NCBI RefSeq assembly: GCF_006345805.1
Contig: NC_043000.1
Span: forward strand, 59,148,001-59,212,000
Length of the DNA: 64,000 bases
Origin: Octopus sinensis
Taxonomy: Eukaryota
Direction of reading: 5' to 3'
The translations under genes were made by a program, and so were the position numbers. Positions within the stretch are counted from its first letter, which is position 1. Each line of letters starts with the position of its first letter. The notes beneath the pieces are model-generated. The model was not told where the DNA came from, did not search any database, and was given only the letters and a program-made list of their open reading frames with translations. Positions 1,605 through 58,727 of the stretch are shown here, in pieces.

Positions 1605-1842
1605 TGTTATATAATCATCACAACAAACATGAACAATCAACGTCGCCCATTGTCTCCCTTGATAAAAGGACTTTCAGTTTGTTTCCCGCCAAAACAATTA
1701 ACTTGTACAACAACGGCAGTCGAATAAAGTATCTTGTATCGTTAACACGTTGTTTCAGTCTCTCTCATATTCTTAATCTTTCATACTAAGTACTCACTAC
1801 TTCCTTTAATACTCAATACATTATATATATATAACAACAACA
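1605..1842 (+). repeat. 5' LTR
   Basis: TGTTATATA...TATATAACAACAACA. Differs from the 3' LTR at 2 positions by manual comparison (both G in the 5' LTR, A in the 3' LTR). Confidence 0.97.
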
Positions 1843-1853
1843 TGGTGTCAGAA
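1843..1853 (+). promoter_or_regulatory. Primer-binding site TGGTGTCAGAA (probably tRNA-Leu primed)
   Basis: Directly abuts the 5' LTR and begins TGG (complement of tRNA CCA). Matches the recalled 3' end of tRNA-Leu(CAA). Confidence 0.75.
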
Positions 1854-1896
1854 TACTAAAAGAACCCAAAATACAGAAACCAAAGGAAAAAAGAAG

Positions 1897-2538
1897 TTGA
1901 AATCATACTTCAAAGACGAAATGGAAAATTTACCGCATCCAAAAGACCTAGACTTTAATCAGGAAAATCTAGCCGCAGCATGGAAAAAGTGGAAAAAAGA
2001 ATTCAATCTCTTTTTGATAGCAACAGAAAGTGACATGAAGCCAGACAAAGTAAAAACTTCAATGTTTTTAACTTGCATCGGTTCTAAAGGCCGAGATATC
2101 CATTCCACACTGGATTTCGATTCACCCGACGAAGAAATGAACCTTCAGACAGTAATCGAAAAATTCGATGCATATTGTGAACCCAGGAAAAACATAACTT
2201 TCCTAAGACACAAATTCTTCACATGTGGACAAGCGGAACATCAAAAATTCGATGAGTACGTAGTAGAGTTGCGCCAAAAGGCACAACAGTGCGAATTCGG
2301 CAACCTCACAGACAGTCTCACCAAAGATATTCTGATATGTGGAATCAGAGACATGAGATTAAGAGAAAGATTATTGAGAGAACCAAATTTAGACCTACAA
2401 AAAACAATTCAAGCAGGTCAGAGTGCAGAGCAAACACGACTCCAATCAAGGATGCTAAATGCCACATCCGAAACAAGAGATAACGAAATCTCGAGGGTAT
2501 ATAGTCAACACGACAGAAAAGCGCCAAAACTCAAATAA
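1897..2538 (+). CDS. gag: Gypsy Gag, capsid-like N-terminal part (first ATG at 1921)
   Basis: WKKWKKEFNLFL...FLTCIG, FDAYCEPRKN...ERH-like LRHKFFT, and KDILICGIRD..LRERLLRE motifs typical of Mag/K02A2.6-type Gag. Confidence 0.85.
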   Translation: MKSYFKDEMENLPHPKDLDFNQENLAAAWKKWKKEFNLFLIATESDMKPDKVKTSMFLTCIGSKGRDIHSTLDFDSPDEEMNLQTVIEKFDAYCEPRKNITFLRHKFFTCGQAEHQKFDEYVVELRQKAQQCEFGNLTDSLTKDILICGIRDMRLRERLLREPNLDLQKTIQAGQSAEQTRLQSRMLNATSETRDNEISRVYSQHDRKAPKLK

Positions 2539-2546
2539 CCCGCCAT

Positions 2547-4619
2547 ATGCAATCCAGACATCAAAACGAACAAGGCGGAAGTGACAGAAAGCCCGCGAAG
2601 TTTCAAGCGCCAAGTCAACACTACGTCACTAACTGTCACTATTGTGGTTATAATCACAAAAGAAATAAATGCCCAGCATTTCACAAGACATGTGAAAAAT
2701 GCAAGAAACAAGGACACTATGCAAAAATGTGCAAATCAAGAAAATTTGTACATAAAGTAGAGATACATACCGACGATGAATCAGATGACGATACACATGT
2801 ACTCGAAATGATCACTGCAAATAATTCCCGCGTGCACAAAATCGAAAAGTTCAAGACTCCAAAAGACATTTGGACGGTCGAACTAAAAGTGAACAACTCG
2901 AATGTAACATTCAAAATAGATACAGGAGCAGACGTAACCGTACTGCCATTCAGAGAATATAGAAATATAATTCCAAAACCACAACTGCAAAAAACTTCAA
3001 CTCGATTATCAGCTTATAATAACACAGCTATAAAAGTGCTAGGAAAATGCACAGCAGTCATTAAATACAAAGAATTATCAAAGCAAATAAAATTCATTGT
3101 TGCAAAAACAAACTCGCACGCAGTTATAGATGCAAAGACAGCTAAAGATCTGAACCTAATTCAGAGAAATTCAAAAATAAATTCGTCGAACACAAACGAC
3201 ATATTAGAAAAATATGAAGACTGTTTCGGAGAAATCGGCACTTTGTCAATAACACATCATATCACAGTGGATCCACAAATAACTCCTGTAATTCATCCAC
3301 CAAGATCGGTTCCTTTTTCTATAAAAGAAAAACTCAACAAAGAATTAAAAAGAATGACAGAATTAGATATCATAAAACCTGTTAGTGAACCTACAGACTG
3401 GGTAAATTCCCTAGTCATCGTTGAAAAAGCCAACGGAAAACTCCGACTCTGTTTAGACCCCAAGAATCTAAACAAAGCCATAAAAAGGCAACATTTCAAA
3501 CTCCCTACAGCGGAGGACATTTTTGCACAAATGCATAACCCTAAATATTTTTCAAAACTCGATGCATCTAATGGATACTGGCAAATTCCAGTTGACGAAG
3601 AAAGCTCCCATCTTTTAACGTTCAACACACCTTTTGGAAGGTATCGCTTCACACGACGACCCCTTGGAATTCACAGCGCCAGTGAAGTTTTCCAAAAAGA
3701 AATTTCAAAAATAATAGAGGGCATAGAAGGAGCAAGAAATTCACAGGATGACATCATAATCTGGTCCAACACTTTAGAAGAACACACAAATAGACTACAA
3801 CAAGTTTTCGATCGAATCCGAAAGCACGGATTAAAGTTAAATAAATCAAAGTGTATCTTCTATGAATCACAAATCAAGTACCTTGGGCATATATTAACCA
3901 GCGAAGGGATAAAACAAGATCCAACCAAAGTACAAGCAATCATTCACATGCCACTGCCAACAAGTAAAAAAGAATTACAAAGATTCCTAGGTATGACAAA
4001 TTACCTATGTAAATTTTTATCTAATTACTCCGAAGTCACAGCACCATTGCGCCAGCTTCTACAGAGTGACACGTTATGGTCATTCGACAAACCACAAATC
4101 GAAGCAATAAAAAAGCTAAAAGAAATGATTACCAGAAAACCAGTGCTACAATTTTATGATCCAGATCTACCAATAAAAATAACTACAGATGCTAGTAAGC
4201 ATGGGCTCGGAGCGATACTTGAGCAGAAACACAACGAAAGATGGCTACCTGTTTCGTTTGCATCTCGTGCAACAACTCAAGCGGAACAAAACTACTGTCC
4301 GATAGAGAGCGAAGCTCTCAGTATAGTTTTCGCATGCAAGAAATTTCATCAGTTTATATACGGAACTCATTTCAGAATCGAAAATGACCATAAACCGTTG
4401 AAGCAAATATTCAAAAAATCGATCACTAAATGCCCCCCCAGAATCCAAAGATTTCTACTAACATTACAAAGATATGATTTTGACCTAAACCACATACCTG
4501 GTAAAGAATCAATTGTTGCAGATACCCTATCACGTGCATACCTTGAGCAAAATACTCCAGAAGTATCAGACGAAGATATGAAATCGCACATTCATGCAGT
4601 AATAAAAATTACCCCATAA
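2547..4619 (+). CDS. pol: Gypsy nucleocapsid knuckles, aspartic protease, reverse transcriptase and RNase H
   Basis: CEKCKKQGHYAKMC knuckle; FKIDTGADV protease; KLRLCLDP, KLDASNGYWQI and SQDD RT motifs; TDASKHGLGA and ENDHKPL RNase H motifs. Confidence 0.95.
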   Translation: MQSRHQNEQGGSDRKPAKFQAPSQHYVTNCHYCGYNHKRNKCPAFHKTCEKCKKQGHYAKMCKSRKFVHKVEIHTDDESDDDTHVLEMITANNSRVHKIEKFKTPKDIWTVELKVNNSNVTFKIDTGADVTVLPFREYRNIIPKPQLQKTSTRLSAYNNTAIKVLGKCTAVIKYKELSKQIKFIVAKTNSHAVIDAKTAKDLNLIQRNSKINSSNTNDILEKYEDCFGEIGTLSITHHITVDPQITPVIHPPRSVPFSIKEKLNKELKRMTELDIIKPVSEPTDWVNSLVIVEKANGKLRLCLDPKNLNKAIKRQHFKLPTAEDIFAQMHNPKYFSKLDASNGYWQIPVDEESSHLLTFNTPFGRYRFTRRPLGIHSASEVFQKEISKIIEGIEGARNSQDDIIIWSNTLEEHTNRLQQVFDRIRKHGLKLNKSKCIFYESQIKYLGHILTSEGIKQDPTKVQAIIHMPLPTSKKELQRFLGMTNYLCKFLSNYSEVTAPLRQLLQSDTLWSFDKPQIEAIKKLKEMITRKPVLQFYDPDLPIKITTDASKHGLGAILEQKHNERWLPVSFASRATTQAEQNYCPIESEALSIVFACKKFHQFIYGTHFRIENDHKPLKQIFKKSITKCPPRIQRFLLTLQRYDFDLNHIPGKESIVADTLSRAYLEQNTPEVSDEDMKSHIHAVIKITP

Positions 4620-5852
4620 CCGACACTAAATTAAAAGAGTATAAAGAAGCCACTGCAGACGACCCGTCTCTACAGACACTCGTCACATTTACAAGAACAG
4701 AATGGCCCCCAAAAGACAAAATACCAATAAACATCAAACCATTCGTATCTGTTCGTGATGAAATATCAATCGTCAATGGTCTCGTTCTAAAAGGTTCAAG
4801 AATAATTGTACCTAAGTCATTACGTAGAGAAGCTCTACAGGAAATACATACCGGACACATGGGTATCGAAAAATGCATAGAGAGAGCGAAGGAATGTATA
4901 TACTGGCCCGGCATTAACGCTCAAATCAAAGACATGATTAACACATGCTCATACTGCATTGACTACAAAAATCAACAAGCAGCCGAACCACTAATAAATC
5001 ATGAAATACCTACTACACCATGGACCAAAGTGGGTACAGACGTATTTCACCTGTCTGGAAATTCGTATGTCACAATTATTGACTATACAACAAGATTTTT
5101 TGATCTACACGAAATAAATGATTGCCAGTCAAAAACCGTAATCAAAAAATTAAAAGAAACTTTTGCTAAATTCGGAATTCCGCAAACAGTTGTAAGTGAC
5201 AACGGTCCAGAATTCAATTCGGCTGAATTCAAAAAATTTGCATTTTCATCACACGAAGACAAGCCCGCATTATCATCAAGCGAATGGCATGGTTGAGAGA
5301 AATATACAGACAATAAAAAAGACGCAAAAAAAGGCATTCAAAAGTGACGAAGAACCTCAGTTAGCGCTCTTAGCATTACGCACGACTAAATTACAAAATG
5401 GTGCACCATCCCCTGCAAATCAAATAATGAATAGAACATTGCGAACAAATCTCCCAAACATACTACACGGCAAAATTGGTATCAGGCCTCACGAAAAGAA
5501 GAAATCAAACATTACAACAGAACTCCCAGAGTTAAAACCACACGACACGGTTAGAATTAAGTTTAACAACAATTGGTTTAGAAGGGGCAAAATAATTAAA
5601 AAACTAGAGCAACCTCGTTCATACTTAGTAATAACAGAGGAAGGTAATACAGTCAAACGAAATAGACAACATATTCTTAAAACAAACGAACACGTTCGCA
5701 TAACAGAAGAATTAGATTATGAAAATATATTTCCTAAGTCAACAAACACGCATGAAAAAACAAAAACAGCACAACTACAGAATTCAACACTACAAAATAA
5801 TAAAACCACAAAAAGTGGACGACGAATAATTATTCCCTGTAGATACAGATGA
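4620..5852 (+). pseudogene. Gypsy integrase region split by frameshifts near 4615 and 5245
   Basis: HTGHMG...YWPG...CSYC (HHCC zinc motif), GTDVF, VSDNGPEF and NGMVERNIQT (DDE) spread over ORFs 4859-5296 and 5196-5852. Confidence 0.9.
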
Positions 5853-5874
5853 TAATAAAAAAAAAAATAAATAT

Positions 5875-5889
5875 AAAAAAAAAGGAAGA
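5875..5889 (+). promoter_or_regulatory. Polypurine tract
   Basis: AAAAAAAAAGGAAGA immediately before the 3' LTR. Confidence 0.85.
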
Positions 5890-6127
5890 TGTTATATAAT
5901 CATCACAACAAACATGAACAATCAACGTCGCCCATTATCTCCCTTGATAAAAGGACTTTCAGTTTGTTTCCCGCCAAAACAATTAACTTGTACAACAACG
6001 GCAGTCAAATAAAGTATCTTGTATCGTTAACACGTTGTTTCAGTCTCTCTCATATTCTTAATCTTTCATACTAAGTACTCACTACTTCCTTTAATACTCA
6101 ATACATTATATATATATAACAACAACA
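5890..6127 (+). repeat. 3' LTR
   Basis: Direct repeat of 1605-1842, followed by the TSD CATC. Confidence 0.97.
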
Positions 6128-6131
6128 CATC

Positions 6132-6750
6132 TACCGCTGGTACCTTTTTTCTTCTTTTTTTTCTGTCTATTCACACGGTTCCTTGCAAGCACAACACTTG
6201 TGCAACATGCTTCCATCTCCTTTGGAACGTACACTCCGACAGACATCTCTTCTCCAGCCACAGCTTCCTTTTCAAATGAAAAGAAAAAAATGATCGTAAA
6301 TTGTGGCCAGAGATAAAGTTGCCTGTCTTAATTCCTTTTATCCTAGTCTTCCATACTGCCTCTTTTGATATTGCTACAACCGTGAGAAAACAATTCTTAC
6401 CTTCATTCGTTAAAACTCCCGGTGTCAATTTTTATAATTGACTCAGTCTACAGCTGTACTCTTCCTTCGCCGGACAACAGGTGTTCAGCATAAGCCCACA
6501 TTTCAGTTATCTTGGGACACTGAACAATAGCGTGAGGGACGGTTTCCCTGTCCCCACTCCGTATCTTGGACAGGTCGGCGACTGGCGCTTACCGTGTCTT
6601 GCGAGCTTATCCCAAATGGGCAAGGCACATCTGTAGCATTGCCAGGTTGAGGACTTTTGGAAATTGTCCAACGTTCTCAACCCGAATGTACGGTGAAACA
6701 GGCTATCCAGTTGAATAAACCCGAGTCCTAGAGTCGCCCCCAGGCCATCG
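6132..6750 (-). pseudogene. Tx1/L1-like LINE A, ORF2 C-terminal fragment (continuation of 1406-1604), 5'-truncated
   Basis: Aligns with LINE B 8270-8880 (e.g. TAATTGACTCAG..ACAGCTGTACTCTT). Removing the gypsy element restores CCTCCATCTACCGCTGGTACC, which is colinear with B CCCCAATCTCCTACTGGAATC. Confidence 0.8.
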
Positions 6751-6899
6751 TCGCATTCAGACTACCAACCCACTATCAAGTCACTGATACTGGATGTATG
6801 TTTTAATGGTTCATTCTTCATAGAGGAAAGCCTAAATATTTCCGACATTTTGTTTATCTCGTTTCCTGGTAAGTAAGAAGTCTATTTTGCTAGAATGTT

Positions 6900-7140
6900 A
6901 ACCTGAATGGTAGGCGTTGAGGAGGCTGGCCGGTTTCATGAAGTTAGTGTTGCGTTCGGTAATTTGCATTACAGGACATTAAGAGCCTTGATCCTTCTTC
7001 ATTACATGTACCATAACTATGACTTCCATATACATCAGAATAGGCAGGATGGTGTTGTTCAACATGTCTATTAAAGACACCAACCATGTTAACGAAGTTA
7101 TTGTCATCTGTTTTTGAGGTAGTCTGCAAGAAGGTTCCAT
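6900..7140 (-). pseudogene. RTE-like LINE endonuclease fragment
   Basis: GVFNRHVE...YGSHSYGTCNEEGSRLL resembles the APE motif GDFNGHVG...YG.G..NEEG.RLL. Confidence 0.5.
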
Positions 7141-8057
7141 AGAAGCGATCCTTTTGCTAATCTCTTGATTTCAGTGCATATGCAGAGATCATCACTGCTG
7201 ATGTTTGTCTACGACTAATCTAAGCTTAGTTATTCAGTCACATACGACTACCACAATTACTTTAGTAATTTCTCAGCCCAAAATATGCCTATTTCACCAA
7301 CTCTAGTGCTGTTATCCACTCAGAAGAATTTGTACCAGTGTTCCTTGTCTATGGAGAATCTGATTGAGGTTCCCTCCATCTTGTTTCTTGTGCACAACAT
7401 GCACCTAGTCACTTCTGCTCAAGAATCTCTACAACCTCTCTAGACTTATTTTTCATTGTGTTAATAAAGATAGTCGTCTTGAAGCTTTTCACTGAAGAAT
7501 AAGAGGAAGTTTGTCTTGCGGTATTTGGGTTCGTAACAGAGTGACCAGCTATTGAAATTGACAGCTATATAGCTGTTAAGTATATGAAGGCAGAGAGAGA
7601 GCAACCGAACCGTCAGGGATAGTCGATGAGATGCTGAAAGTTATAGAGCAAAATAGGACATCACTCAATATAGCTACTACAATTAGGTACTACAAGGTTT
7701 TTTTTTCATCAAGGCGAGCTATGAAGATCCTGCTGTTTTCATAGGAAAATTAATATATAACCAATGACGACCCAAGCTCAATTATCAAATGATGGTGAAC
7801 AACAACCAGCAGAATTTGTAATGTTTGTTGCTTTGATTCCGTATACCACTTTACGAAGGAATAAAGCTGGTTTCTTTTGTTACTTCTACGAATGAACATG
7901 CAAAATATATTATACAATGATATACATGTTTTTTTAGTAAAACCAAGGGTGACTTTAACCAATGTAAAACTCTGTTCTTCATAGTCGACGGTTTTTTAAA
8001 ACTTGGGGTCGAGTAGCAGCCAAGAAACCAGTCTTCTTTCGGACTTGTTAGACTGTG

Positions 8058-8075
8058 TCACCTATGGGCACCTCT
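8058..8075. repeat. Array-delimiting motif TCACCTATGGGCACCTCT, copy 1 (21 bp including GTG at 8055)
   Basis: Recurs at 12249-12266 (one mismatch) and 13918-13935, each time exactly at an element boundary. Confidence 0.9.
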
Positions 8076-8309
8076 ATATTTCTTTATTACCCACAAGGGG
8101 CGGAATACAGAGTGGGACAATACAGCCTGATTGGGGTCAGACACAATGATTATATAACTTTTAAAAATTTACATGATATAATGAAATCGAATGAAATACA
8201 ACAAGGACAAAATACAAACATGAAATGAAGCAGAGAGATGGGTTACGCTCCGACCTCACGAGCCCCAATCTCCTACTGGAATCTTTGTATACAGGCTTAT
8301 GACATGTTC

Positions 8310-10790
8310 ACGAGGAATCTTTCATTCCTAGCACCCTCGTAACATGCAACCATCTTTCTTTGAATATTTTCTCTGGCAGGCATCTTCTCTCCAGCCTCAC
8401 CTTCCTTTTAAGGTGGAAGATAAAAAATCTCACCAACCCGAGACCGGAAATGAAGTCGCCTGTCGCCAAACCTTTCATTCGCGTCTTCTATACCACCTCT
8501 TTCGCAATTGCTACTACTGTGACAAAACAATGCTTACCTTCTTTCGCGAGGAAATCCGGCGGTTCACTTTTTACAATTGACTCAGACGACAGCTGTACTC
8601 TTCTCGAACCTGACAGCAGATGTTCTGCATAAGCCCACACTGCAGACATTCCCGGAAACTGAACAATAGCGTGCAGGACAGTTTCCCTATCCTGCCCGCG
8701 TCTTGGACAGTCCGTAAGTCTAGATTGACCGTGTCGTGCGAGCTTATCCCGAACGTGTAAAGCTCCTCGGTAACATTTCCAGGCCAGGGATTTTTGGAAA
8801 TTATCCAAACACCCCGGCCCGAACGTCCCTCAGAACAGACTGTCTAACTGGTTATCTCCGAGACCTAGTGTATTCCCAGCCTCTACCAACCTGCTATAGA
8901 AAGATGTGATGGTACCAAAACCGCTGGCATTACCCGAGCGACGGAACAGTAGGAGTGTTTTACGGCACTCCGTAAACCATGTACGGACACCAGGTACCGA
9001 TGGTCAACCCTATCTAATGCTTTTGACTGGTCTAAATGGACCAAAGCCCCACCTTTGCCAGGATCACTACCAAACTCTTCTAAGGTATAGCATATATGAT
9101 GGAGATTGTCCTGAATGCTTCTGCCGGGGACGGCACAGGTTTGTACCTTGCCGATCTGGACATTCGCAATCCGCGCCAATCTTTTTGCTCGTACCTTGGC
9201 CAAAATCTTCAACTCTGCGTTTAACAGAGTGAAGGCCTAAAGTTGTCTATCTTATCCCCCTCGTCTGGGCCCTTCCTGACCAGAGTTATCACTCCCCGGC
9301 GTACAGATTTGGGGATCAACCCATTCTGCTGCCAGTTCGCGTAAACACCGGCCACAATTTGCCCAAACAAGTCTGGCATACTTTTGTACAGTTCGTATGG
9401 AAAACCATCAAGTCCCGGAACCCTACCAACTTTGCAATCAGCTATAGCCTCTCTCACCTTCTCAGGTGTGATCGACCCTTCACAGCACTCAGCATCCTGC
9501 CCCGAGAGACGCAGCAGCCCGGTAAGGAAGTCCGAAAGGTCCAACCTACTATCCGGTCCATCGCCCTCCCGAAAAGCTGTGCAAAGTGCTCCTGAAAAGC
9601 ATGACATCTCATCGGGCTCGTTCACAATCTCGCCTTGTAGGTTCTCCACAGATCGAATTGTGGAATCATTTCCACGTTGGGTTTCCACCATCTGGGCCCA
9701 TCCATCGGCATTGATCCCCTCACTCCCCAATGCATGAAGTCTGGCCCTGATAATGCATCCCATGTGTTTGACCTCGAGGTGCTGGTTTAATTCCAGTCTC
9801 TTAGCCTTCACCCGAGCAGCACTACCAATCAACACGGCTTCCTCTAATTCCTTAACTAGTTTTAGTTCCCTCTTACGCTCTCTAGTCACTAAACCTATGC
9901 TATATCTAACAGACTCAAATTTAATGGCTCTTTTGAGGGCGTACCACCATTTATTATTAATGATGGTACCTGTTAAAGCTCTCTGTATCAATAACTTAAT
10001 CCGGCTCCTGTACTTTTCAATCGCCAAAAGGGACTTATTGAGTCTCCAGTAACCGGATCCTCTATTCTGTAACTTATCTAGGTTCAGCTTACAAGTGACC
10101 AATTTATGATCATTGTAGCTGACCAAGTGGAACTGTAGACACTTAGCTATGGATTTATTTCTCTAATTAGAATCCTATCTATATAGGACTTAAAAGACTC
10201 GTCACCTCTTAACCATGTCCACACTGGGGTGTTCGGGAATTCAAGTCTGTATGGATCTACTAGCTGAAAGTGACATGGTAGATCCCGGAAGCCGGCATTC
10301 GGTACCCTATTTGAGTTCGAGCCAACATTATCTACGCGCTCATCGTGATTAGTGTTAAAGCCCCATAACAAAACTAATGAGTACGACGTAACAAGAAACT
10401 TCTCTAGGTTTCGGAAATACTCAGATTGACCATTATTGGAGGCGTAAATTGCCACCAGTCTGATTTTCTTACCGCAACTGAAAGTCAGGTCTAAGACGAC
10501 CAGCCTACCTTCTGGGTCAGAAAAAATTGACTTCTCTGAAACCCGGTTTCTTTTTAGTAGGACCAATACCCACCCCACTCTCCGGCGGACCTGGAGAAAT
10601 AAATTTCTCGTATTCGCTCAGGAGTGGGAGCAGACCGCTTGATCCCTTTAACTGGGTTTCAGTAGCAACAATGACATCCAAATTATGTGACCTGACGTCG
10701 TTTAAGAAGCGACCTTGCTTCCATCCCGCGGTCAGGCCACGCACATTTAAACATCCAACGTGAACTGCTATAAGCCTTACCTTAATTTAC
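8310..10790 (-). pseudogene. LINE B ORF2 (endonuclease, partial RT, C-terminal domain), frameshifted
   Basis: Fragments 10517-10744, 10147-10578, 9221-10126, 8883-9212 and 8488-8808 occur in L1/Tx1 ORF2 order; no YADD segment is present. Confidence 0.85.
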
Positions 10791-11124
10791 TGTGTCTTCG
10801 TTAAAAGGCGAAGGGTGGGGTGTTAAGTAAGCCATCGTACAGTTGGTCTGAAATATCCCACCTCATCGGGCCAACATCGTCCCGATAGTCATTTTTTAGA
10901 ACGTTGTAAGACGTTCTGTCCACGTAATATATTTCGAACCCGTCTTTTACGTTTTTGTATTCAGTTCTTTTAATTTTTTTTGTTACATTTTATTCGGCTC
11001 ATTAACCTCGAGTTTGAGGTTCGAATACAGTACTTCTTTTTCTCTTGTTTTTGATCTTTTTGCTTTTTCATGCTTTCTTTGATTTCATATTTCTTTTAAT
11101 CTTCCTTTTGCTACCAGCTATCTC

Positions 11125-11989
11125 TCACTCCGTCTCTTCTTTATTTTCGCTCTGATTTTCTTCTTGTGTGTTTTCTTCCTCTATTTTTCCGTTTTCTGTA
11201 GTTTCGTCTTCCGAATCATCTTCGATGTTATTTTCTTTGTTCTCTTTTTCTTTTTCTTCTCCACTCTTGCATTCGGACCTAACATGGCTCTTCTTTCCAC
11301 ATTTAAAACATCTGGGTTTTCTACCCTCCACCATGACGACTAGCATTGTATCCATTATGACTATGACCTCTGGAATTTTTTCTAGGGTCATAGGTTCCGC
11401 TTGGATTAACATTTTTATTGTCTGGCCAAGCCAGACTTTGTCTTCTGTAACTTCCGCGGAAAGAAGTTTGATTTCTTCCTCCAAGTTGTACAGTACTGCC
11501 GCTACTAGCCACTCGGCGTTTATTTCTGGTGGTACACAGCTTATCTTTATTCTGGAGGTTCTCCTCCCCATATAAATAGCCAACAGTACCACCTCAACTG
11601 TTCGCAGCGGCTCCACAGAATATTTTTGTGCCTGTTCCACTGTCGACATTCTCACTTCAGCGGTTGCATATCTTTTTCCTTTGGCCAAATATTTGATGTC
11701 TTTCCATATAGGCCTTAAACATTTTTCTACGTTTTTGTCATTTACATAGTCAATTTTTTTTTTCAACGTTATACGTTTTGAAAACTATAGTCCTTTCGAG
11801 TGCATCTTTAATGATGCTATGAGGAGGGACCACCTTTATTTCGTTCCTTTCTTTCGTTAATAGCTCCAGGTGTGCCTTCAAATTGGTTGTATCAGTTTTC
11901 CTTGAGTTTCCTCCGGCGGCAGCCGCAAAGCTCCTTATTGGTTCCTCCCCAGTTGCAAGGCTGGGTTCATTAATATTCCTTCTGCTCAC
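11125..11989 (-). pseudogene. LINE B ORF1 (gag-like, CCHC zinc knuckle)
   Basis: ORFs 11750-11989 and 11125-11766 join across a T10 run (11754-11763); CFKCGKKSHVRSEC followed by an acidic tail. Confidence 0.85.
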
Positions 11990-12245
11990 TACGAATCCTT
12001 ACTCGTACTTGGCTCTGGAGATACACTCTTTACGCGTGTCAATACTTTCCATTGTGTAAAAAACACAAATAAACACAATAAAAAATTCCCTCGCACAGGG
12101 GAATTAAAACAGATTTTGCTTCACAACAAGCAATAAACAGTTCCCTTTTTTTTTCAAAATATAACAAATTTAACAATATCAATAGCAGCCACAAAATTTT
12201 ACCTTCGCACGACCAAAAAAAACACACTTGTAACCACGAGGGAAA

Positions 12246-12266
12246 GTGTCACCTATGGGCAACTCT
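12246..12266. repeat. Array-delimiting motif, copy 2 (GTGTCACCTATGGGCAACTCT)
   Basis: Lies between the 5' end of LINE B and the 3' tail of element C. Confidence 0.9.
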
Positions 12267-13917
12267 TTATTTTTTATTACCCATAAAGGGCTTACATAGA
12301 GGGGGACATCACAAACATTGGGGACACAAAACACACACACAAAAAAAAATACAGGAACGTATGATGAAAAATGAAAAATTGTAAAAATGAGAAATAAAAG
12401 CGATGTTAACGGCCCCATCCGATAACATCACTTACTTGTCCTTCTTCCCTATATCGGGATAAAAAAAAAACATGTAGTCCTCTAGTTTCGTCCCATGTTT
12501 TTCTTCCAGTTCATATCTCCTATTCGGTTCAATCGTTTTCCAAATTAAATCACAACTTTTTAAAAGTTTTTCTTTGAGTTCTTTTTCTTGGTCATCTGAT
12601 ATTACTATATCCATCAACCCCAACTCATTCCAGCTGTCTTGCAATTCCACCTTTCTCCAATCCCTCAATATTTCAAGTATTTCTTCCTTGTTTCTTACAC
12701 CTAAAACATGGGGACGGGAATTTTTAAAGTTATCTTGTGTGGTTGTGTTTCTTTTTTGTTTTCTTGTTGGTGGGGAGCGGGTGGGCTCAGTGTCTGCAGG
12801 GAAAGGGTGGGCCACACAAGGTGCGGGTGGTGATGGGGTGGGTTGGGGTTCAGTACAGTTTATCTTTTTCTCCTTCTCGTCCTCCTTCTTCCCATGGATT
12901 CCCATTCTGTTGGTACCTCCTCCTCGACCACTTGCTTCTCTTCCGCTGTATTCTCTGTCTGCTCCTCTAACTCTCTTGCTGGTTCCTTTCTTGGTTCTTT
13001 TGTTGGGGGAGGACAGTTAGTTCTTATGTGGCCCTTCAAGCCGCATTTGTAACAACGATGAGCTCTGCCCTCCATCCATACTCTCATCATGATATTTCCC
13101 ATTGTTATCGTCTCGGTCAGTTGTTCTAGTACTTCTAATTCTGCCCGGACACCCATCTCCAGCACTCCTCCTCTCCATCCTCCTTCGTCCGTCACCGTGG
13201 CATGAAGAATGTCTACTTTATCTTCATTGCCGCTGATAATGGTTGCCACAATCTACTCTCCGTCTATGTCTGGCGGTATTCCCTCCACCCTGATCCGGGT
13301 CGTCATTATTCCCAGATACGAGGGCAGAAGGAATACTTTCTCCGTCTTTATAGCCATTATTCTTGCAACTTTTTCGTACTTGAACTGCACAACCACGGTG
13401 CCGAACCCAATGCCTCTTGCGAGAAACGTTACCTCCTCTTCCATCGTTCTCAGTGCTTCCTCTTTCATTTCCATACCGACCAACTCTATTCTTATTTTTT
13501 CGTTAGCGAAGACTTTGTATGTAATAGTCTTTTCTCATACCAGTCTCTTCTTTTCCTTGGCGGCGACAATTCAACGTCACCGCCTACCTTTGTTAAAAAT
13601 TCTCGATAGCCTGGCAACTTAGCCAGATCTACCTCCTTTTCCGTTGACTTCATCGCTCGCGCGTATGTTGCTTTTTCTCCCAGTTCTCTATCCAATTTCC
13701 TCACTGCCTTTGCCAGTTCCTCATCAGAGGTCGACAGTTCCGACTCACTGAGGCTCGAAAATACGTTATTCCTCGCCATTCCCCCCCTTAGGGAGGGGTA
13801 AACCGTTTTTTTTCTTGTCTGTCACCGACAGGCAAAATTCAACAATAACGATTAACAAAAATTAACAAACAAGAGGCAAAGCAATTACTCACAGGTTCGA
13901 AAAAACGACTACACAGT
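12267..13917 (-). mobile_element. Element C: ORF1-only (half-LINE) Tx1-like retroposon
   Basis: Frameshifted ORF1 (13492-13779, 13253-13483, 12860-13249, 12432-12905) with CYKCGLKGHIRTNC, followed directly by a ~165-bp 3' UTR ending CCCTTTATGGGTAATAAAAAATAA. No ORF2 sequence. Confidence 0.8.
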
Positions 13918-15296: not shown

Positions 15297-15780
15297 ATGA
15301 GTCATTTTCCTCTGCCTCAATATCAAGGAGATGCTAAGATGTGGTTTTCACAATTGGAATCGTTTTTCATTTCTTTTAACATTCAGTCAGCCTAGAGAAA
15401 ACTTCACATCGCTCTTACTGGCATTCTTTCTCCGCTCGCACTTTCAGTGTGAGATATGATAACAGGAACCCCACCAGATATGACTTACGAAACCTTCAAA
15501 GTCGAGGTTCTGCGGCGTAACTCACCCTCGGCTGAGAGTAAATTTCGCACACTCTTGCAGGATGAGCATCTCGGGGACCGAATCCCCACCCAGTTTTTAC
15601 GACGAATCGAAGAGTTGTCCAATAGCTCATATGAAGGACAGGCATTTGTCAAGCAACTATTTTTCTTGAGGATGCCTTCTAATGTACCAGTCGATTAGCT
15701 CCTATGATGGAACACACGGCCCTTGAACAACTCGCCGCCTCCGCAGACAGGATTATGGAATTTTCTGGCTCACTATCCTC
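15297..15780 (+). pseudogene. Gypsy gag relic
   Basis: WFSQLESFF, TYETFKVEVL, LGDRIPTQFLRR and [13 protein letters not shown] motifs, with stop codons. Confidence 0.75.
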
Positions 15781-16029
15781 TGCTTCTTCATCTTCCTCTC
15801 AAGATTCTACTTCTTCTGCTCTGGTTCATATACAATCCTCTGAAATCTTGCGGGCTGTCGCAGAACTGACCCGTCAGGTTTCACGCATGTGTAGGAATCG
15901 TTCGTCTTCAAGCACTGTCACACCCCAGCATTGCGTCCACAGTAAAGCTTATGTAGGCCCGCTTTTTCTGGCCAAATATGCGACACTCATGTGCCTGTCT
16001 ACCATGTCAGCGTTCCAAAGGTCATCGTC

Positions 16030-16325
16030 ACTTGAGAGCACCTCTTGGAAATTCCAGCCACCGGACGCCAGGTTCCGTCACATACACATGAACCTGGTTG
16101 GTCCTTGGCTGATCAGTTGTGGATTTACTTATATATTGACCTGCATTGACCGTTTCTCCAGATGGCCTGAAGCCATCCCCCTCATGGACATTTCTGTGGA
16201 AACAATTGCCCGAGCACTTGTCTCTGGGTGGATATGTCGCTTTAGAGTACCCTCTAGAATTACTACTGATAGTTGACACCAATTTGAAGCTTGTCTGTTC
16301 TGTGAGAGTTTGAGATTGTGGGGCA
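16030..16325 (+). pseudogene. Gypsy integrase relic, part 1
   Basis: [15 protein letters not shown]...[15 protein letters not shown]...SRITTD (rve core). Confidence 0.85.
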
Positions 16326-17350
16326 CAGTCATGCCTTTGGTTGTCAGAAGTGAAAGTAGAAAAATCTGACGTCAGACGTCAACTTCGTGTATTTACGTCG
16401 TCATGTTTAAACTTTCGTTTATTTACGTACCACCACGCTTTAATTTACGCCGTTTATTTACGTACCACCACGCTAGGTTTATAAACAATTGAAGCTTGAA
16501 GTTAAGTTTATAAATAAATACATTTCATTTGACCGTGAATCATTCAATAAATTTTGTTGATCCGGTAACATTTGCCACAACCAACCACATAGAATATATA
16601 TATATGCAAGGTTTATGCAGAATAGGTTACAAGATTAATATATTTCGGTACTTGTCTATTGTAGTGGTCCCGGTTGCGCGGGCGCGAATTCGCGCGCGCC
16701 AGACGTAGGTGCTCGATACTCGAGATCCAACGAGGTGACTTGCGCATGCGCAGTGCGCGATTCGCGCATGCGCAGTGCACGATTCGCGCATGCGCTTTAA
16801 CCCCCACCCCGGATTTTTTCAGATACCTTTCTGCTTTTTAAGACAAAAAGGTGTTGGATTTCACAAAAAATATGTGTGTTTGTGTGTGTATATAACATTT
16901 TCAATTTTACACAAAAAAATTACATAGTCGCTTTCCTCGCGGATTTACAGATAAATGAATTAATTACTATTTTACAGAATAAAATTAATGAATTAATTAT
17001 ATAAATTAAATAATTCTTGAAAATTAATTAATATTAATAATATTTTTTGAACAAAGTAAATAATTTTTAAAAGTGTATATATATATGTATACAATAATAT
17101 ATGTTGTACATACCTTAAATTTTTCATGATATTGTAGCGATTTTATGACAGTGTAGCAAAATAGTAGTCAATTAGATAAATACATTTTTTTTCTGGGGTA
17201 TTTTTTTTCAACCTCGTCACATATTTGCACCTTTCAATTTAAACCTTTCAATTTAAGTCTTAATTAAGCAATTGCGGCAGCTTAGCAGAAATGTCACGTT
17301 CTAATTTCTGTTATTCAATGGTTTCAATACACGCGTGACATCATACCCCT

Positions 17351-18088
17351 TCAAATTTTATACCATTCTGAAAGATGTTTCAGAATATTCATCACACAAT
17401 CGTTTTCATTTTGTCCATACTGTTCCTTCCACAGAAACTCATCAAGGTACGAGTCCACCATGGTGGAATGTACCCCCATCATCGTTTTAAATTTTCTTTT
17501 TGCATTTTTCCAGTAACATTCCACAGAATTTGTGTGTACACCTGTTAGCGGATCCACAAAATTCTGGGAATGGTTTACTGTGAAATGGATGTATTTTGGT
17601 GTCACATCCATTTCTGCAATCCCATTATAGGCGGCCCAGCAATCCGAATGAATTGTGCCTGGTCTAATATATTTTTTGATGATGGGTAGCAGAGTTTCCG
17701 AGGAACGGTCAGCTACGAAGAGTAGGAAGCCTTTTTTCTCTTCTCTATCATAACCTCCAAAGACCCATCTCTCTTGTGGCGTTCTCCCTCTATTGTACTT
17801 CCTCTTGCACATCAGACTTTCATCTATTTCAACAACTTTTCCGACACCACCAATTTGGTATGGATTGTTGACCAGATTGTTACTACAAATATCTCGCATG
17901 TATTGAAACCATTGAATAATGGTACATTTTGACAATCCAGTCATTGCTATTGTTGCTGTTATTGTTAGGTTATTGCCCCAACAATATATTATATGTATGA
18001 AATCATGTAAGTTTCAATCTGCTATTTTCGAGATAGGAGTTCCTTCTAATTGATTCTTTTTCCCCTTTGTGAGTTGGGCAGCGAAATA
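17351..18088 (-). pseudogene. Inverted partial copy of the Merlin transposase (lacks the N-terminal 49 codons; 1-bp insertion at 18009-18010)
   Basis: ORF 17351-17944 encodes the same C-terminal 197 aa as 18368-19249. Confidence 0.92.
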
Positions 18089-18367
18089 TTCTGATGATAA
18101 AATGTTTTTGAAAGAATATATTTTTATAAAAATCTAGAATATATATACTTTTCTCACACTACAATTAAGATATATTTATTTTAAATCGTTCATCTTTCTC
18201 CCCCCCCCCCCCCACAACAAAAATTAGTTTGAAAGAGGGGACAGAGAAAGTTCTAAAATCTAACCAATCAGAGCTAACTGACTTCTTACCATGATAGTGA
18301 AAATAACTTTATTAGTTATTTTCACTTTATCTTCACCAGTTGAACTGTGAGATAAAATTAAAAAATA

Positions 18368-19249
18368 ATGTTGTATGAGATAGAAAGTATCGTGAAAGAC
18401 TTTGATAGTATTTATTCCTTCCTCAAGGACAAAAAGGTCTTAAGTTCCTCTTCGCCAATTTGTTCGAGATGCCAGAGAGAGATGACTCTGATAAAACACA
18501 ATCAAGAAAAAGTATTTCGCTGCCCAACTCACAAAGGGGAAAAAGAATCAATTAGAAGGAACTCCTATCTCGAAAATAGCAGATTGAAACTACATGATTT
18601 CATACATATAATATATTGTTGGGGCAATAACCTAACAATAACAGCAACAATAGCAATGACTGGATTGTCAAAATGTACCATTATTCAATGGTTTCAATAC
18701 ATGCGAGATATCTGTAGTAACAATCTGGTCAACAATCCATACCAAATTGGTGGTGTCGGAAAAGTTGTTGAAATAGATGAAAGTCTGATGTGCAAGAGGA
18801 AGTACAATAGAGGGAGAACGCCACAAGAGAGATGGGTCTTTGGAGGTTATGATAGAGAAGAGAAAAAAGGCTTCCTACTCTTCGTAGCTGACCGTTCCTC
18901 GGAAACTCTGCTACCCATCATCAAAAAATATATTAGACCAGGCACAATTCATTCGGATTGCTGGGCCGCCTATAATGGGATTGCAGAAATGGATGTGACA
19001 CCAAAATACATCCATTTCACAGTAAACCATTCCCAGAATTTTGTGGATCCGCTAACAGGTGTACACACAAATTCTGTGGAATGTTACTGGAAAAATGCAA
19101 AAAGAAAATTTAAAACGATGATGGGGGTACATTCCACCATGGTGGACTCGTACCTTGATGAGTTTCTGTGGAAGGAACAGTATGGACAAAATGAAAACGA
19201 TTGTGTGATGAATATTCTGAAACATCTTTCAGAATGGTATAAAATTTGA
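18368..19249 (+). CDS. Merlin/IS1595-family DDE transposase, 293 aa, open frame
   Basis: N-terminal CxxC...CxxH, then VEIDES (D137), HSDCW (D197) and VNHSQNFVDPLTGVHTNSVE (E238). Confidence 0.93.
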   Translation: MLYEIESIVKDFDSIYSFLKDKKVLSSSSPICSRCQREMTLIKHNQEKVFRCPTHKGEKESIRRNSYLENSRLKLHDFIHIIYCWGNNLTITATIAMTGLSKCTIIQWFQYMRDICSNNLVNNPYQIGGVGKVVEIDESLMCKRKYNRGRTPQERWVFGGYDREEKKGFLLFVADRSSETLLPIIKKYIRPGTIHSDCWAAYNGIAEMDVTPKYIHFTVNHSQNFVDPLTGVHTNSVECYWKNAKRKFKTMMGVHSTMVDSYLDEFLWKEQYGQNENDCVMNILKHLSEWYKI

Positions 19250-19954
19250 AGGGGTATGATGTCACGCGTGTATTGAAACCATTGAATAACAGAAATTAGA
19301 ACGTGACATTTCTGCTAAGCTGCCGCAATTGCTTAATTAAGACTTAAATTGAAAGGTTTAAATTGAAAGGTGCAAATATGTGACGAGGTTGAAAAAAAAT
19401 ACCCCAGAAAAAAAATGTATTTATCTAATTGACTACTATTTTGCTACACTGTCATAAAATCGCTACAATATCATGAAAAATTTAAGGTATGTACAACATA
19501 TATTATTGTATACATATATATATACACTTTTAAAAATTATTTACTTTGTTCAAAAAATATTATTAATATTAATTAATTTTCAAGAATTATTTAATTTATA
19601 TAATTAATTCATTAATTTTATTCTGTAAAATAGTAATTAATTCATTTATCTGTAAATCCGCGAGGAAAGCGACTATGTAATTTTTTTGTGTAAAATTGAA
19701 AATGTTATATACACACACAAACACACATATTTTTTGTGAAATCCAACACCTTTTTGTCTTAAAAAGCAGAAAGGTATCTGAAAAAATCCGGGGGGGGGGT
19801 TAAAGCGCATGCGCGAATCGTGCACTGCGCATGCGCGAATCGCGCACTGCGCATGCGCAAGTCACCTCGTTGGATCTCGAGTATCGAGCACCTACGTCTG
19901 GCGCGCGCGAATTCGCGCCCGCGCAACCGAGACCACTACAATAGACAAGTACCA

Positions 19955-20150
19955 TATATTTCTTTACTGCCAACAAGGTGCTAAACATAGAGGGGACAAA
20001 CAAGGATAGACAAACGGATTAAGTCGACTACAGCGAAACTGGTACTTTATCGACCCCGAAAGGATGAAAGGCAAAGTCGACCTAGGCGGAATTTGAACTC
20101 AGAATGTAACGACAGACGAAATACCGCTAAGCATTTCGCCCGGCGAGCCT
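19955..20150 (-). mobile_element. SINE S1 with a Tx1-LINE-like 3' tail; head has a small internal deletion
   Basis: S1 core plus tail GCACCTTGTTGGCAGTAAAGAAATA. Flanked by an 18-bp TSD-like repeat, TAGGTTAC(AA/TG)GATTAATA, at 16623-16640 and 20151-20168. Confidence 0.88.
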
Positions 20151-24471: not shown

Positions 24472-24660
24472 GTCAGTGAGCTGGTAAAATTGTTACCTAG
24501 CAGCATTTCTTCCATTTTATATTTTGAGTTCAAATTCTGCTGAGGTCAACTTTGCCTTTCATCCTTTCAGAGTTGATAAAATAAATACCAGTTCAACACG
24601 AGTTGATGTAATCAACTTCTATTCCCACTCTAAATTGATGGCTTTGTGCCAAAATTAGAA
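24472..24660 (+). mobile_element. SINE S1, diverged
   Basis: GAGTTCAAATTCTGCTGAGGTCAACTTTGCCTTTCATCC core. Confidence 0.75.
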
Positions 24661-34869: not shown

Positions 34870-36260
34870 AATGATCCTTTCTACTAAAGGATCAAAAAGC
34901 AACATGCTCAAAGGCACAATGCAACCCAGTACTTATTTCATTGACACCAAAAGGATGGAAAGCAAGGTAAACCTTGGCAGAAGTTGAAGTCAGAACATAA
35001 AAATGGATGAAATGTTGCTAAGGATGAAAGGCAAAATCGATCTTGGTGTAATTTGAACTCAGAATGTAAAGATGGACAAAATGCCACCAAGCATTTTGCT
35101 TGGTATGCTAACAATTCTGCCAGCTTGCTGCTTTAATAATAATAATAATAATAATAATAATCCTTTCTGTTATAAGCACAGGGTCTGAAATTTTTTTTTT
35201 AGGGGGCGCATTCGATTATATCAACTCTAGTATGCAACTGGTACTTAATTTATCGACCCCGAAAGGATGAAAGGCAAAGTTGACCTTGACAGCATTTGAA
35301 CTCAGATTGCAATGATGGATGAAATGCTGCTCCACTAAGCATTTTGCCTGACATGCTGATAATTCTGCCAGCTTGCTGCCTTTAAAATGATTGTTTTCTA
35401 ATATAGGTACAAGACCTGAAATTTTTAGGAGAGGGGCTGCACAGAAGTTAAGCTGATATTTTTAAACACAGTACTTGATATGTTATCTCATCAACCCTAG
35501 AGGGATGAAAGGCAAGTTGATCTCAATGGAATTTGAACTCAGAATTTAAAGAGATGCAAGAAATACTGCAAGGCATTTTATTCAATAATCTAATAATTCT
35601 GCCCATCCATTGCTTTGGGATTTGAACTCAGAACATAGAGAGTTGACAGGTATACTACAAGGCACTATATCCACTGCTCTAACAATGTTGTTAGTGCAGT
35701 ATCTTTCTTCTGTTTTGAGCCTGCAGGTTTCCTCAGGCTGGAATTCATTCAGATTTTCAAGGTGTTTGGGCAGAATATACAAAACTTTCTTTTGAATGGG
35801 ATACCAGTCTTTTGCAGGGTTAACCCATATGTGCTACTGGTACAGATTTCCAGCTGAGTGTACTGGAACAACATGCTCAAGGACTCAAAGCAACCCAGTC
35901 TGTGATGAGAACCCACAACTTCACTGCTGTGTGCCCAGCATCCAAACTACTAGGCCATGAGCCTTCACTGCCAAAAACATTGTTGAATAATAATATCCTT
36001 TCTACTATAGGCACAGGGCCTGAAATTTGGTGAGGTGCTAATTGATTACATTGACCCCCAGTACTTGACTGGTACTCATTTATTGGCCCTGAACAGGATT
36101 AAAAGCAAATTCAACCTTGGTGGAATTTGGACTTAGAACGTAAAGACGGATGAAATGCAGCCCAACTGGTACTTATTTAATTTACCATGAAAGGATGAAA
36201 AGCAAAGTTGGCCTCAATAGAATTTGAGCTTAGAATGTAAAGATAGACAAAATGCCACTA
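34870..36260 (-). mobile_element. Cluster of 4-5 diverged S1 SINE copies
   Basis: Repeated AAGGATG(A/G)AA.GCAA.GT..ACCT..G...AATTTGAACTCAG cores near 34950, 35030, 35260, 35500, 36100 and 36190. Confidence 0.8.
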
Positions 36261-46411: not shown

Positions 46412-46465
46412 TTATTTAATGTAAAAAGATTGACCAAAAACCATCTACTGCATATTCGAGTGCAC

Positions 46466-47296
46466 ATGGAAATTTGCAATGGAAAAGATTCTTTTCACAG
46501 CGAATTTGAAGGAAAAGATTTACCCTTGAGATCACATGAGAAAAGTAATGAGAGATCATCAACAGAAGAATTACATTTTCATTGTGAGACATGTGGCAAA
46601 GACTTTTTAAGAAACATCAATCTTACAAGACATATGAAAATACACTCTGGGGAAAGGCCATTTTTCTGTGGGGTTTGTGGGAAAGACTTTCTAGAGAGCT
46701 CCAATTTAACTAAACATATGAGAGTACATACAGGAGAGAAACCTTTCCACTGTGAAATTTGTGGGAGGAATTTTTCTCACAGTTCTAATCTCACCCAACA
46801 TATGAGGACACATACTGGTGAAAGACCTTTCTCTTGTGGGGTTTGTGGGAGGGATTTTTCAGATGGTTCTACCCTCAACAAACATCTTAGGATACATACT
46901 GGGGTGAAACCTTTCCTCTGTGAAGTATGTGGCAAAGACTTTTCTCAAAATTCTTACCTCACACAACATCTCAGAACCCATACTGGGGAGCGACCCTTTC
47001 ATTGTGAGATATGTGAAAAGGATTTTTCTCAAAATTCACATCTAACAAAACACATGCGAATACACACTGGCGAAAGACCGTTTAGTTGTCAAATGTGTGG
47101 AAAGGGTTTTTCACAGAATTCCCATCTAACAAAGCATATGAGGACACATAACGAAGAAAAACCATTTCACTGCGAACTATGTGGGAAAAATTTTTCCCAT
47201 AATTCTAGCCTTAATGTACATATGAGATCACACACAGGAGATAAATCTTTTGAGTTTCAGATATGTGAAAAACTTTTCCAGATGGTTCCAATTTGA
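46466..47296 (+). CDS. C2H2 zinc-finger protein, 8 tandem fingers, single coding exon (276 aa from ATG 46466)
   Basis: Eight CxxC-x12-HxxxH units with TGE(R/K)PF-type linkers; putative acceptor TTTTTTCAG ending at 46112 suggests a spliced 5' UTR. Confidence 0.9.
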
Positions 47297-51929: not shown

Positions 51930-52741
51930 TATAATAATTCTTTCTACTATAGGCACAAGGCCTGAAATTTGGAGGAAGGGGCTAGTTGATTACATCAACC
52001 CCAGTACACAACCGTTACTTATTTCATTGACCCCAAAAGAATGAAAGGCAAAATCGACCTTGTCAGAAATTGAACTCAGAACATAAGAGCAGGATGAAAT
52101 GCCGCTAAGCATTTGCCCAGCATGCTAATGATTTTGCCAACTGACCACCTTAATAATAATAATCATTATAATTTCTACTCTAGGTACAAGGCCTTGAAAA
52201 GTTTTTGGGGACGGGGGAGGGGTAGTCGATTATATCAACCCCAGCATGTAACTAGTACTTATTTCATCAACCCTGAAAGGATGGAAGGCAAAGTGAACTT
52301 CGGTGAAATTTGAACTCAGAATAATAATAATAATCCTTTCTACTATAGGCACAAAGCCTGAAATTTGGTGGGAGGGGACTAGTCGATTACATCAACCCTA
52401 ATATTTCTTCACTGCTATTTAATTTATTGACTCCAAAAGGATGTAAGGCAAAGTCATCAAATACTGTTAAGTATTTCGCCCAGCATGCTAACGACTCTGC
52501 TTGCTCACTGTCTTAATAATAATAATAATGGGTTCAAATTTTGCCACAAGGGTAGCCACTTTGTGGGAGGGGACAAGTCGATTACATCCACCCCAGTCTT
52601 TCATTGGTACTTAACTTATCAACCCAGAAAAGATGAAAGGCAAAGTCAATCTCGGCAGAATTTGAACTCAGAATGTAAAGACAGATGACATACTGCTAAG
52701 CATTCTGTCCAGTGTGCTAACGATTCAGTTAGCTCGCCACC

Positions 52742-54004: not shown

Positions 54005-54226
54005 AATAATATTCCTTTATACTATAGGTACAAGGCCTAAAATTTTGGGGAAGGGGGCTAGTCGATTGCATCGACTCCAGTGCATAACTGGTACTTATTT
54101 CATCGACCCCCGAAAGGATAAAAGGCAAAGTCGACCTTGGCGGAATTTGAACTCAAAACGCAAAGACAGACGAAATACCGCTAAACATTTTGCCCGTTGT
54201 GTTAACGATTCTGCCAGCTCGCCACC

Positions 54227-58331: not shown

Positions 58332-58727
58332 AATCCTTTGTACAAAAGGCACAAGTCCTGAAATTTGGTGGAGGGGATAGTCGATTACACCGACTCCAGT
58401 GTTTCATTGGTACTTAATTTATCAACCCCGAAAGGATGAAAGGCAAAGTCGACCTCAGCGGAATTTGAACTCAGAACGCAACAGCAGACGAATACCTATT
58501 TCTTTACTACCCACAAGGGGCTAAACACAGAGGAGACAAACAAGAACAGACAAACGAATTAAGTCGATTACATCGACCCCAGTGCGTAACTGGTCCTTAA
58601 TTTATCGACCCCGAAAGGATGAAAGGCAAAGTCGACCTCGGCGGAATTTGAACTCAGAAGGTAACGGCAGACAAAATAGCGCTAAGCATTTTGCCCGGCG
58701 TGCTAACAATTCTGCCAGCTCGCTGCC
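58332..58727 (-). mobile_element. S1 SINE dimer: full copy with Tx1-like tail (58497-58727) joined at GAATACC to a headless copy (58332-58496)
   Basis: Tail TATTTCTTTACTACCCACAAGGGG on the plus strand; A-box-like TGGCAGAATTG and B-box-like GAGTTCAAATTCC on the minus strand. Confidence 0.88.

Follow-up and report, generated by a model that had tools for sequence, protein, structure and literature searches.

A Merlin transposon of the octopus lineage with 1.44-kb inverted arms that take in most of its own transposase gene

Transposons of the Merlin superfamily (IS1016/IS1595-related; Feschotte 2004 as summarised in PMC8101967) have been described with non-coding inverted ends of 24-462 bp, a DDE_Tnp_IS1595 transposase of about 290-300 amino acids with an N-terminal zinc-binding motif, 5'-GG ends and target-site duplications (TSDs) of 8-9 bp. 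Much longer ends are found in Galileo, of the P superfamily, where they are internally repetitive, vary in length between copies and grow as tandem repeats expand and as internal sequence is recruited, the latter being ascribed by the authors to recombination between long inverted repeats that lie close together (PMC3573991). In maize, Mu killer is a non-mobile, non-coding derivative for which transcription by read-through out of a neighbouring gene was proposed, and for which small interfering RNAs (siRNAs) and heritable silencing were demonstrated (PMC3440606), while the Ac/Ds composite insertions carry inverted duplications of transposon sequence that came from aberrant transposition or repair (bioRxiv 10.1101/2020.01.07.897926). 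Here we describe a Merlin element in a 64-kb stretch of DNA, referred to at its full length as the window, in which two near-identical inverted arms of 1.44 kb hold 84% of the coding sequence of an intact transposase gene. We consider how such arms may have been formed and what a transcript of them could do.

The element and its target site were delimited as follows, in window coordinates:

16638-16646: left copy of the TSD, ATATATTTC, identical to 19954-19962
16647-18088, minus strand: left arm of 1442 nt, which repeats the right arm in inverted orientation (identity to the reverse complement of 18513-19953: 99.7%)
17351-18088, minus strand: inverted partial transposase copy in the left arm, codons 49-293 plus the stop codon
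18089-18512, plus strand: single-copy spacer, 424 nt, made up of the region upstream of the transposase open reading frame (ORF), 18100-18367, and codons 1-48
18368-19249, plus strand: transposase ORF, 293 amino acids, uninterrupted, the only long ORF of the element
18513-19953, plus strand: right arm, 1441 nt, the reverse complement of the left arm, containing codons 49-293, the 3' non-coding region and the terminus
19954-19962: right copy of the TSD, ATATATTTC, identical to the left copy

A repeat finder and explicit alignment both identified the arms as reverse complements, which differ by three substitutions (16670/19930, 16806/19794 and 17888/18712) and one indel, a single extra A at 18009, and are thus 99.7% identical, or 0.28% divergent. 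The element starts with GGTACTTG and ends with CAAGTACC, and with its flanks reads ATATATTTC/GGTACTTG...CAAGTACC/ATATATTTC; the 9-bp direct repeat is perfect (chance about 4^-9), and the terminal 23-mer is present within the window at the two element ends only (0 expected). Without the element, the uninterrupted target site would read ...GATTAATATATTTCTTTACTGCC... These observations support that the window carries a complete Merlin/IS1595-type element with GG...CC termini. The original prediction, made from the letters of the window, had already described the GG termini and perfect TSD, the arm coordinates with about four differing sites, an intact 293-residue DDE transposase in the right arm, and a left arm consisting of an antisense copy from codon 49 onward plus the whole right end. 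All of this was recovered in our alignments, with exactly four differences between the arms and an uninterrupted gene that has a PF12762 match and a DDE triad.

The ORF matched the Pfam family PF12762 DDE_Tnp_IS1595 with E = 6e-18 (65.7 bits against a cut-off of 27), and 836 homologues were found in the protein collection, the best of which was an Octopus sinensis protein with 91% identity, followed by proteins of O. bimaculoides and other molluscs, a pattern that points to an octopus-like genome as the source of the window. In an alignment of 15 sequences, the catalytic residues D137, D197 and E238 fell in conserved columns, and C32, C35, C52 and H55 of a CxxC...CxxH motif (residues 32-55) were in place. 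We compared ten loci encoding relatives (L001-L010) and measured the inverted repeats bracketing each gene:

L001, O. sinensis, the closest relative found: inverted ends of about 1.3 kb
L002, O. sinensis: no inverted ends detectable
L003, ENA metagenome contig: inverted ends of about 360 bp
L004, ENA metagenome contig: inverted ends of 74 bp
L005-L009, Biomphalaria: inverted ends of 26-40 bp
L010, ENA metagenome contig: inverted ends of 184 bp

The terminus pattern GGTA(C/A)-N-(G/A)CCC is common to the window element, L001, L003, L004 and L006-L008, and five relatives have TSDs of 8-9 bp (9 bp in L003, 8 bp in L006-L008, and 9 bp with 4 extra bp in L001). Because of the DDE_Tnp_IS1595 match, the conserved DDE and zinc-binding Cys/His residues, the shared termini and the TSD size, the element is assigned by its sequence to the Merlin (IS1595-like) cut-and-paste transposons, as a member of an octopus lineage. 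It has the transposase type and length, the N-terminal zinc-binding motif, the inverted ends starting with 5'-GG (GGTACTTG...) and the TSD size (9 bp) of the superfamily, and it is unlike the described members in its arms, which at 1441/1442 nt with 737 coding nt inside lie beyond the non-coding 24-462 bp, a range that describes the members known to date and is not a requirement for membership. The premise of the original prediction that described Merlin ends are short was therefore correct (PMC8101967), and the Merlin literature accessible to search contained no inverted ends longer than 462 bp and none overlapping the transposase gene.

The right arm begins at the second base of codon 49, so that 737 of the 882 coding nt (84%) lie inside the arms. 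In the left-arm copy, the extra base at 18009 produces a +1 frameshift at codon 75, which leaves an open remnant of 197 amino acids, M97-I293 (17351-17944, minus strand); a synonymous change at 17888 (I115) is also present. With L001 as outgroup, both of these coding-region changes are derived in the left, redundant copy, and at 16670 the right arm has the derived state; this polarity fits a functional right copy, the numbers being too small to carry weight. Between the window transposase and that of L001, the synonymous divergence (dS) is 0.30 and the ratio of nonsynonymous to synonymous divergence (dN/dS) is 0.25, a value indicating that the gene evolved under purifying selection, as expected where a lineage spreads via its own transposase. 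The C-terminus of the window protein is closer to the family consensus than that of the L001 protein. An exact protein look-up returned no record for either the 293-residue ORF or the 197-residue left-arm ORF, and a sequence search of solved structures gave no match. One short repeat lies within the gene:

18681-18712: 32-nt ORF-internal sequence (codons ~105-115), with an inverted recurrence at 19258-19289 that is 91% complementary

This pair brackets the catalytic half of the gene, with the inverted partner a few nucleotides 3' of the stop codon; it is mirrored in the left arm at 17311-17342 and 17889-17919 and is also found in L001, whose arm boundary falls inside the downstream copy. The pair may be an older recombination scar or may serve regulatory pairing.

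Relatives more distant than L001 have inverted ends of 26-365 bp. The L001 arms (3899-5243 and 6906-8199) are 99.4% identical at aligned sites, with indels besides (BLAST 93%). Element positions 1-799 match the L001 left arm, 3899-5243; the L001 arm-to-arm repeat ends at the equivalent of element position 680, and its repeat units extend to 799. The common part can be placed on the window as follows:

16647-17445: presumed native long inverted end, the part of the left arm in common with L001 (element position 1 to ~680-799)

Thus about 0.7-0.8 kb of the 1.44-kb arm is probably native to the family, as judged from a single comparator, and the addition specific to the window copy is about 640 bp (element ~800-1442) and consists entirely of inverted coding sequence. 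With the same one comparator, very long arms look like a trait of the octopus Merlin lineage, not an invention of the window copy. The L001 arms contain two tandem units of about 320 bp, each with an inverted or direct copy of approximately the last 100 nt of the ORF. In L001 itself, tandem copies of a unit of this size, which takes in the 3' end of the transposase ORF, occupy 6791-7494 and 4632-5243 and are mirrored in both arms. Beyond residue 270 the annotated protein has a different C-terminus, and the L001 gene appears to have been damaged as the arms grew by tandem duplication. A distant Merlin element, L010 (184-bp inverted ends, 2073-7443), has a second gene of 293 amino acids on the minus strand at 2734-3615, which we considered as an inverted transposase copy and ruled out, as it has no Pfam match and no similarity to the transposase.

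These comparisons modify two points of the original prediction. Its foldback structure is essentially right and is better framed, given L001, as growth towards the inside by arms whose length was probably considerable beforehand. Transposition with two right ends, as it had suggested, would place no special requirement on the transposase, because the ends of the family are already symmetrical over hundreds of bp, as in L001. The long internally repetitive ends and the recruitment of internal sequence relative to a related copy, here one comparator, recall Galileo (PMC3573991). Since Galileo has a P-type transposase and the window element one of IS1595/Merlin type, the resemblance is of mechanism and not of membership. 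Moreover, the longest Galileo ends occur only in non-autonomous copies without an ORF, whereas in the window copy the ORF is intact and is itself what was recruited into the arms.

If the foldback had arisen earlier, so that all or most members of the subfamily carry 1.44-kb arms, the window copy would be ordinary. The perfect TSD, intact ends and intact ORF are compatible with transposition in foldback form, and the left arm of L001 also holds inverted sequence resembling the 3' end of the ORF. However, that inverted copy is only about 100 nt long, and L001, the only close relative, is without the extension; the arms of the window element differ by just 0.28% even though the left ORF copy was free to decay. 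Octopus vulgaris has two recently active Merlin families with 11 insertions, 28,998 bp in total and a mean of about 2.6 kb (PMC13282606), shorter than the 3.3 kb of the window element, a comparison that is relevant only if the window comes from O. vulgaris. We consider this explanation unlikely.

The position of the rearrangement was located by aligning the window element with L001. From 18100 (L001 5743), L001 is colinear with the window through the ORF upstream region, the start codon and the right spacer boundary at 18512/18513 to the stop codon, and over the spacer, which corresponds in the same order to L001 5743-6150, identity ranges from 70 to 100% in bins of 60 nt. There is no discontinuity with L001 at 18512/18513, where the spacer's right boundary marks no more than the limit of the duplication. 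We also asked whether the ORF upstream region is unusually conserved relative to the ORF; against L001 this is not clearly so. Left of 18100 the two part: in L001 an unrelated segment of 500 bp (5244-5742) separates this point from the left arm, whereas in the window 11 nt lie between it and the inverted ORF:

18089-18099: novel junction, 11 nt, TCTGATGATAA, of uncertain origin, between the inner end of the arm and the start of L001 homology

As L001 is colinear across 18512/18513 and diverges only left of 18100, the alignment shows a single rearrangement junction in the element, at 18088/18089. Such a pattern would be expected if the ancestral order was L001-like, with a left arm, a left internal segment, the upstream region, the gene and the right arm, and the window copy was derived from it; the opposite polarity would need a breakpoint in L001 to fall by coincidence within 11 bp of the window arm boundary.

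The same alignment bears on whether the structure could be an assembly or library artefact, for instance a chimera formed by foldback or an incorrect join within a long inverted repeat. Assemblers are prone to errors where inverted repeats are long and near-perfect, and two of the four arm differences are in short homopolymers (the C-run at 16806 and the AA at 18009) and are possible sequencing errors. Against this, the duplication stops exactly at the element termini, the flanks differ and the TSD is perfect; a chimeric foldback read would also have duplicated flanking DNA and left little or no spacer, while the 424-nt spacer is single-copy, supplies the first codons of the ORF in frame and aligns colinearly with L001. 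An artefact is thus highly improbable. Slightly less so, and still very unlikely, is a composite origin in which two near-identical elements inserted head-to-head, lost their inner ends by deletion and were transposed together via their two outer (right) ends. Two right ends do face outward in the window element, and alternative transposition with the ends of neighbouring elements is documented for Ac/Ds. By this route, two insertions and a deletion would have to be followed by another transposition that gave the matching TSD, counted as three events against one for a template switch. Identity between the arms is 99.7%, whereas the single other copy of the family that was seen diverges by about 9-13%. 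The Ac/Ds composite insertions are alike in being inverted duplications, and they differ as fractured fragments in larger chromosomal rearrangements, where the window has a tidy element with both termini and a TSD. Typing of the window arms as "right-type" by the sites at which the two L001 arms differ drew on 1 informative site only.

We consider that the element is probably a young Merlin copy whose left internal segment was replaced by an inverted copy of its right part, through a template switch between the long arms. This mechanism is proposed because of the known gap-repair behaviour of cut-and-paste transposons and of the discussion by the Galileo authors (PMC3573991). During repair synthesis at a gap or double-strand break, a 3' end copying the left inverted end would have come away and paired anew with the complementary right inverted end, either on the template or within the same molecule. 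Synthesis would then have proceeded leftwards through the transposase gene in antisense as far as codon 49, after which end joining at 18088/18089 would have linked the copied strand to the second repair end, which lay just upstream of the 5' region of the gene. One template switch and one join would reproduce the structure and leave the flanks and the TSD untouched. The foldback event would be recent, to which the perfect TSD, the intact ORF and the 0.28% arm divergence point.

Several observations weigh against this scenario. The canonical arrangement rests on the one close relative retrieved, and L001 is itself rearranged: it contains tandem units, its C-terminus is broken, and one of its TSD copies has 4 extra bp. 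Near-identity of the arms could also result from gene conversion between them, as the L001 arms are 99.4% identical though that copy looks older. The 11-nt junction TCTGATGATAA is without a clear microhomology signature. In addition, the data are compatible with a foldback made in place, one already present at insertion, or one of many such copies.

Apart from the arms, the element keeps both termini, the TSD, about 270 bp of conserved upstream sequence, with a CCAAT at ~18265 in the spacer upstream of the ORF, and the intact transposase ORF. Since the termini, the subterminal repeats, the upstream sequence and the gene are all retained, it would be expected to be still mobilisable and possibly autonomous. 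The subterminal repeats are as follows:

16742-16795: 22-bp tandem repeat, 2.5 units, with three GCGCATGCGC palindromes; mirror copy at 19805-19858

All 6 occurrences of GCGCATGCGC in the window are inside the Merlin arms (0 expected), three per arm at a spacing of 22 bp; the L001 arms carry 9 (4002-4358 and 7764-8110), and the subterminal stretch is 98% conserved with L001. These repeats could be candidate transposase-binding sites, or a host-factor or promoter element; the palindrome equals the binding consensus of NRF-1.

We then considered what RNA spanning both arms would form. In a fold of the whole element, 1438 of the 1442 left-arm bases were paired with the right arm, at -2703 kcal/mol, so a transcript crossing both arms would be predicted to form a hairpin of 1.44 kb with 84% of the coding sequence in it. 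The roughly 1.4 kb of double-stranded RNA that had been anticipated from such transcription is thus within the capacity of the sequence, and the sequence support for the accompanying idea of a killer allele is limited to this hairpin-forming capacity. An inverted duplication of part of the transposase gene together with the terminal inverted repeat, as in Mu killer, is present in the window element. The locus could therefore be read as a silencer, at which transcription of both arms, by read-through or with initiation inside an arm, would give a hairpin, leading to small RNAs or to hyper-editing by ADAR, and the family would be repressed in trans as MuDR is by Mu killer. Such a reading adds to the structural explanation and does not exclude a template switch. 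Cephalopods have abundant ADAR activity and a piRNA pathway.

In favour of a silencer, the whole-element fold is favourable, with 84% of the coding sequence in the stem, and both Mu killer (PMC3440606) and the Ac composite insertions (bioRxiv 10.1101/2020.01.07.897926) trigger siRNA silencing in maize. These precedents indicate that such structures can silence a family and are not evidence that the window element does so. The gene copies are head-to-head, and an ordinary transposase mRNA starting in the spacer would contain one arm only; transcription reading in from outside would meet AATAAA (16978) and ATTAAA (17005) on the plus strand, or their mirrors at 19622 and 19595 on the minus strand, which lie about 330-360 nt inside the ends in the read-in orientation. 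No host gene or promoter is evident in the flanks, which are filled with transposable elements (TEs). The relative L001 already offers an arm duplex of 1.3 kb, so hairpin potential is not new to the family. Unlike Mu killer, the window element is bounded by a TSD, its transposase gene is intact, no promoter is known that would drive it, and it comes from an animal, not a plant. A silencing function is, on this evidence, quite unlikely. That the element might be a still-autonomous animal counterpart of Mu killer, with an active transposase and an arm hairpin RNA repressing its own family through small RNAs or ADAR, is an analogy to which we give a little less credence still.

We searched for the insertion site without the element and for related sequences elsewhere. 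For an orthologous or empty site, the flanking integrase fragment at 15704-16273 gave matches of 56-81% identity only and the gag-like ORF at 11128-11766 gave matches of 49-92% identity over partial lengths, and neither search found an ortholog. A paralogous empty site was sought through the SINE-like (short interspersed nuclear element-like) repeat of the right flank and rejected, since its copies begin 6-10 bp left of the junction, inside the TSD, and are not independent. A metagenome scan with the terminal 27-mer gave 0 matches, as expected for cephalopod sequence.

The neighbourhood is rich in other repeats. The SINE-like family is abundant, with copies that are 75-89% identical at 19957-20145, 58497-58703, 58415-58496, 54071-54196, 52020-52704, 35020-35578, 1291-1405 and 24498-24583, and in L002 at 11223-11681. 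Because one copy starts within the Merlin TSD, the Merlin element is placed as an insertion at the very edge of a SINE-like repeat. A 52-nt inverted repeat (16326-16377/20375-20426, CAGTCATGCCTTTGGTTGTCAG..., 75% complementary) brackets the Merlin insertion and the adjoining SINE-like repeat; Merlin may sit inside an older element of about 0.8 kb bounded by these inverted repeats, for which no clear TSD was seen. A 197-bp direct repeat, 91% identical, lies about 2 kb either side of Merlin (14447-14643/21310-21506). Farther away, a young Ty3/gypsy-type retrotransposon with long terminal repeats occupies 1605-6127, with 238-bp direct repeats (1605-1842 and 5890-6127) that are 99.2% identical, gag-like and protease/reverse transcriptase/RNase H ORFs at 1897-4619, and an integrase split over two frames at 4859-5852. 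A run of retroelement-like ORFs without Pfam matches is on the minus strand at 9221-13249, and two gag-like ORFs with CCHC knuckles (11125-11766 and 12860-13249) have octopus 'SREK1IP1-like' proteins as their nearest named matches. The only coding sequence noticed in the window that does not look TE-derived is a plus-strand ORF at 46430-47296 with tandem C2H2 zinc fingers (7 matched Pfam stretches), typical of the expanded ZNF families of octopus.

Taken together, the rearrangement is unusual yet can be explained; the element belongs to a known superfamily, and other superfamilies offer clear precedents for the mechanism. If the structure is real and is transcribed across both arms, it would be a candidate natural silencing trigger for a DNA transposon in an animal, and such silencing, if true, would offer a system for studying the onset of de novo DNA-transposon silencing in animals. 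Otherwise, it is a clean case of repair-mediated arm extension in an element that retains its gene, and would be useful for TE annotation pipelines, which tend to split or mis-call such copies. Two octopus copies with arms of 1.3-1.44 kb and different inner boundaries suggest a lineage with a mobile arm boundary, and inward growth of the inverted ends into the transposase gene may happen repeatedly in this octopus lineage of Merlin.

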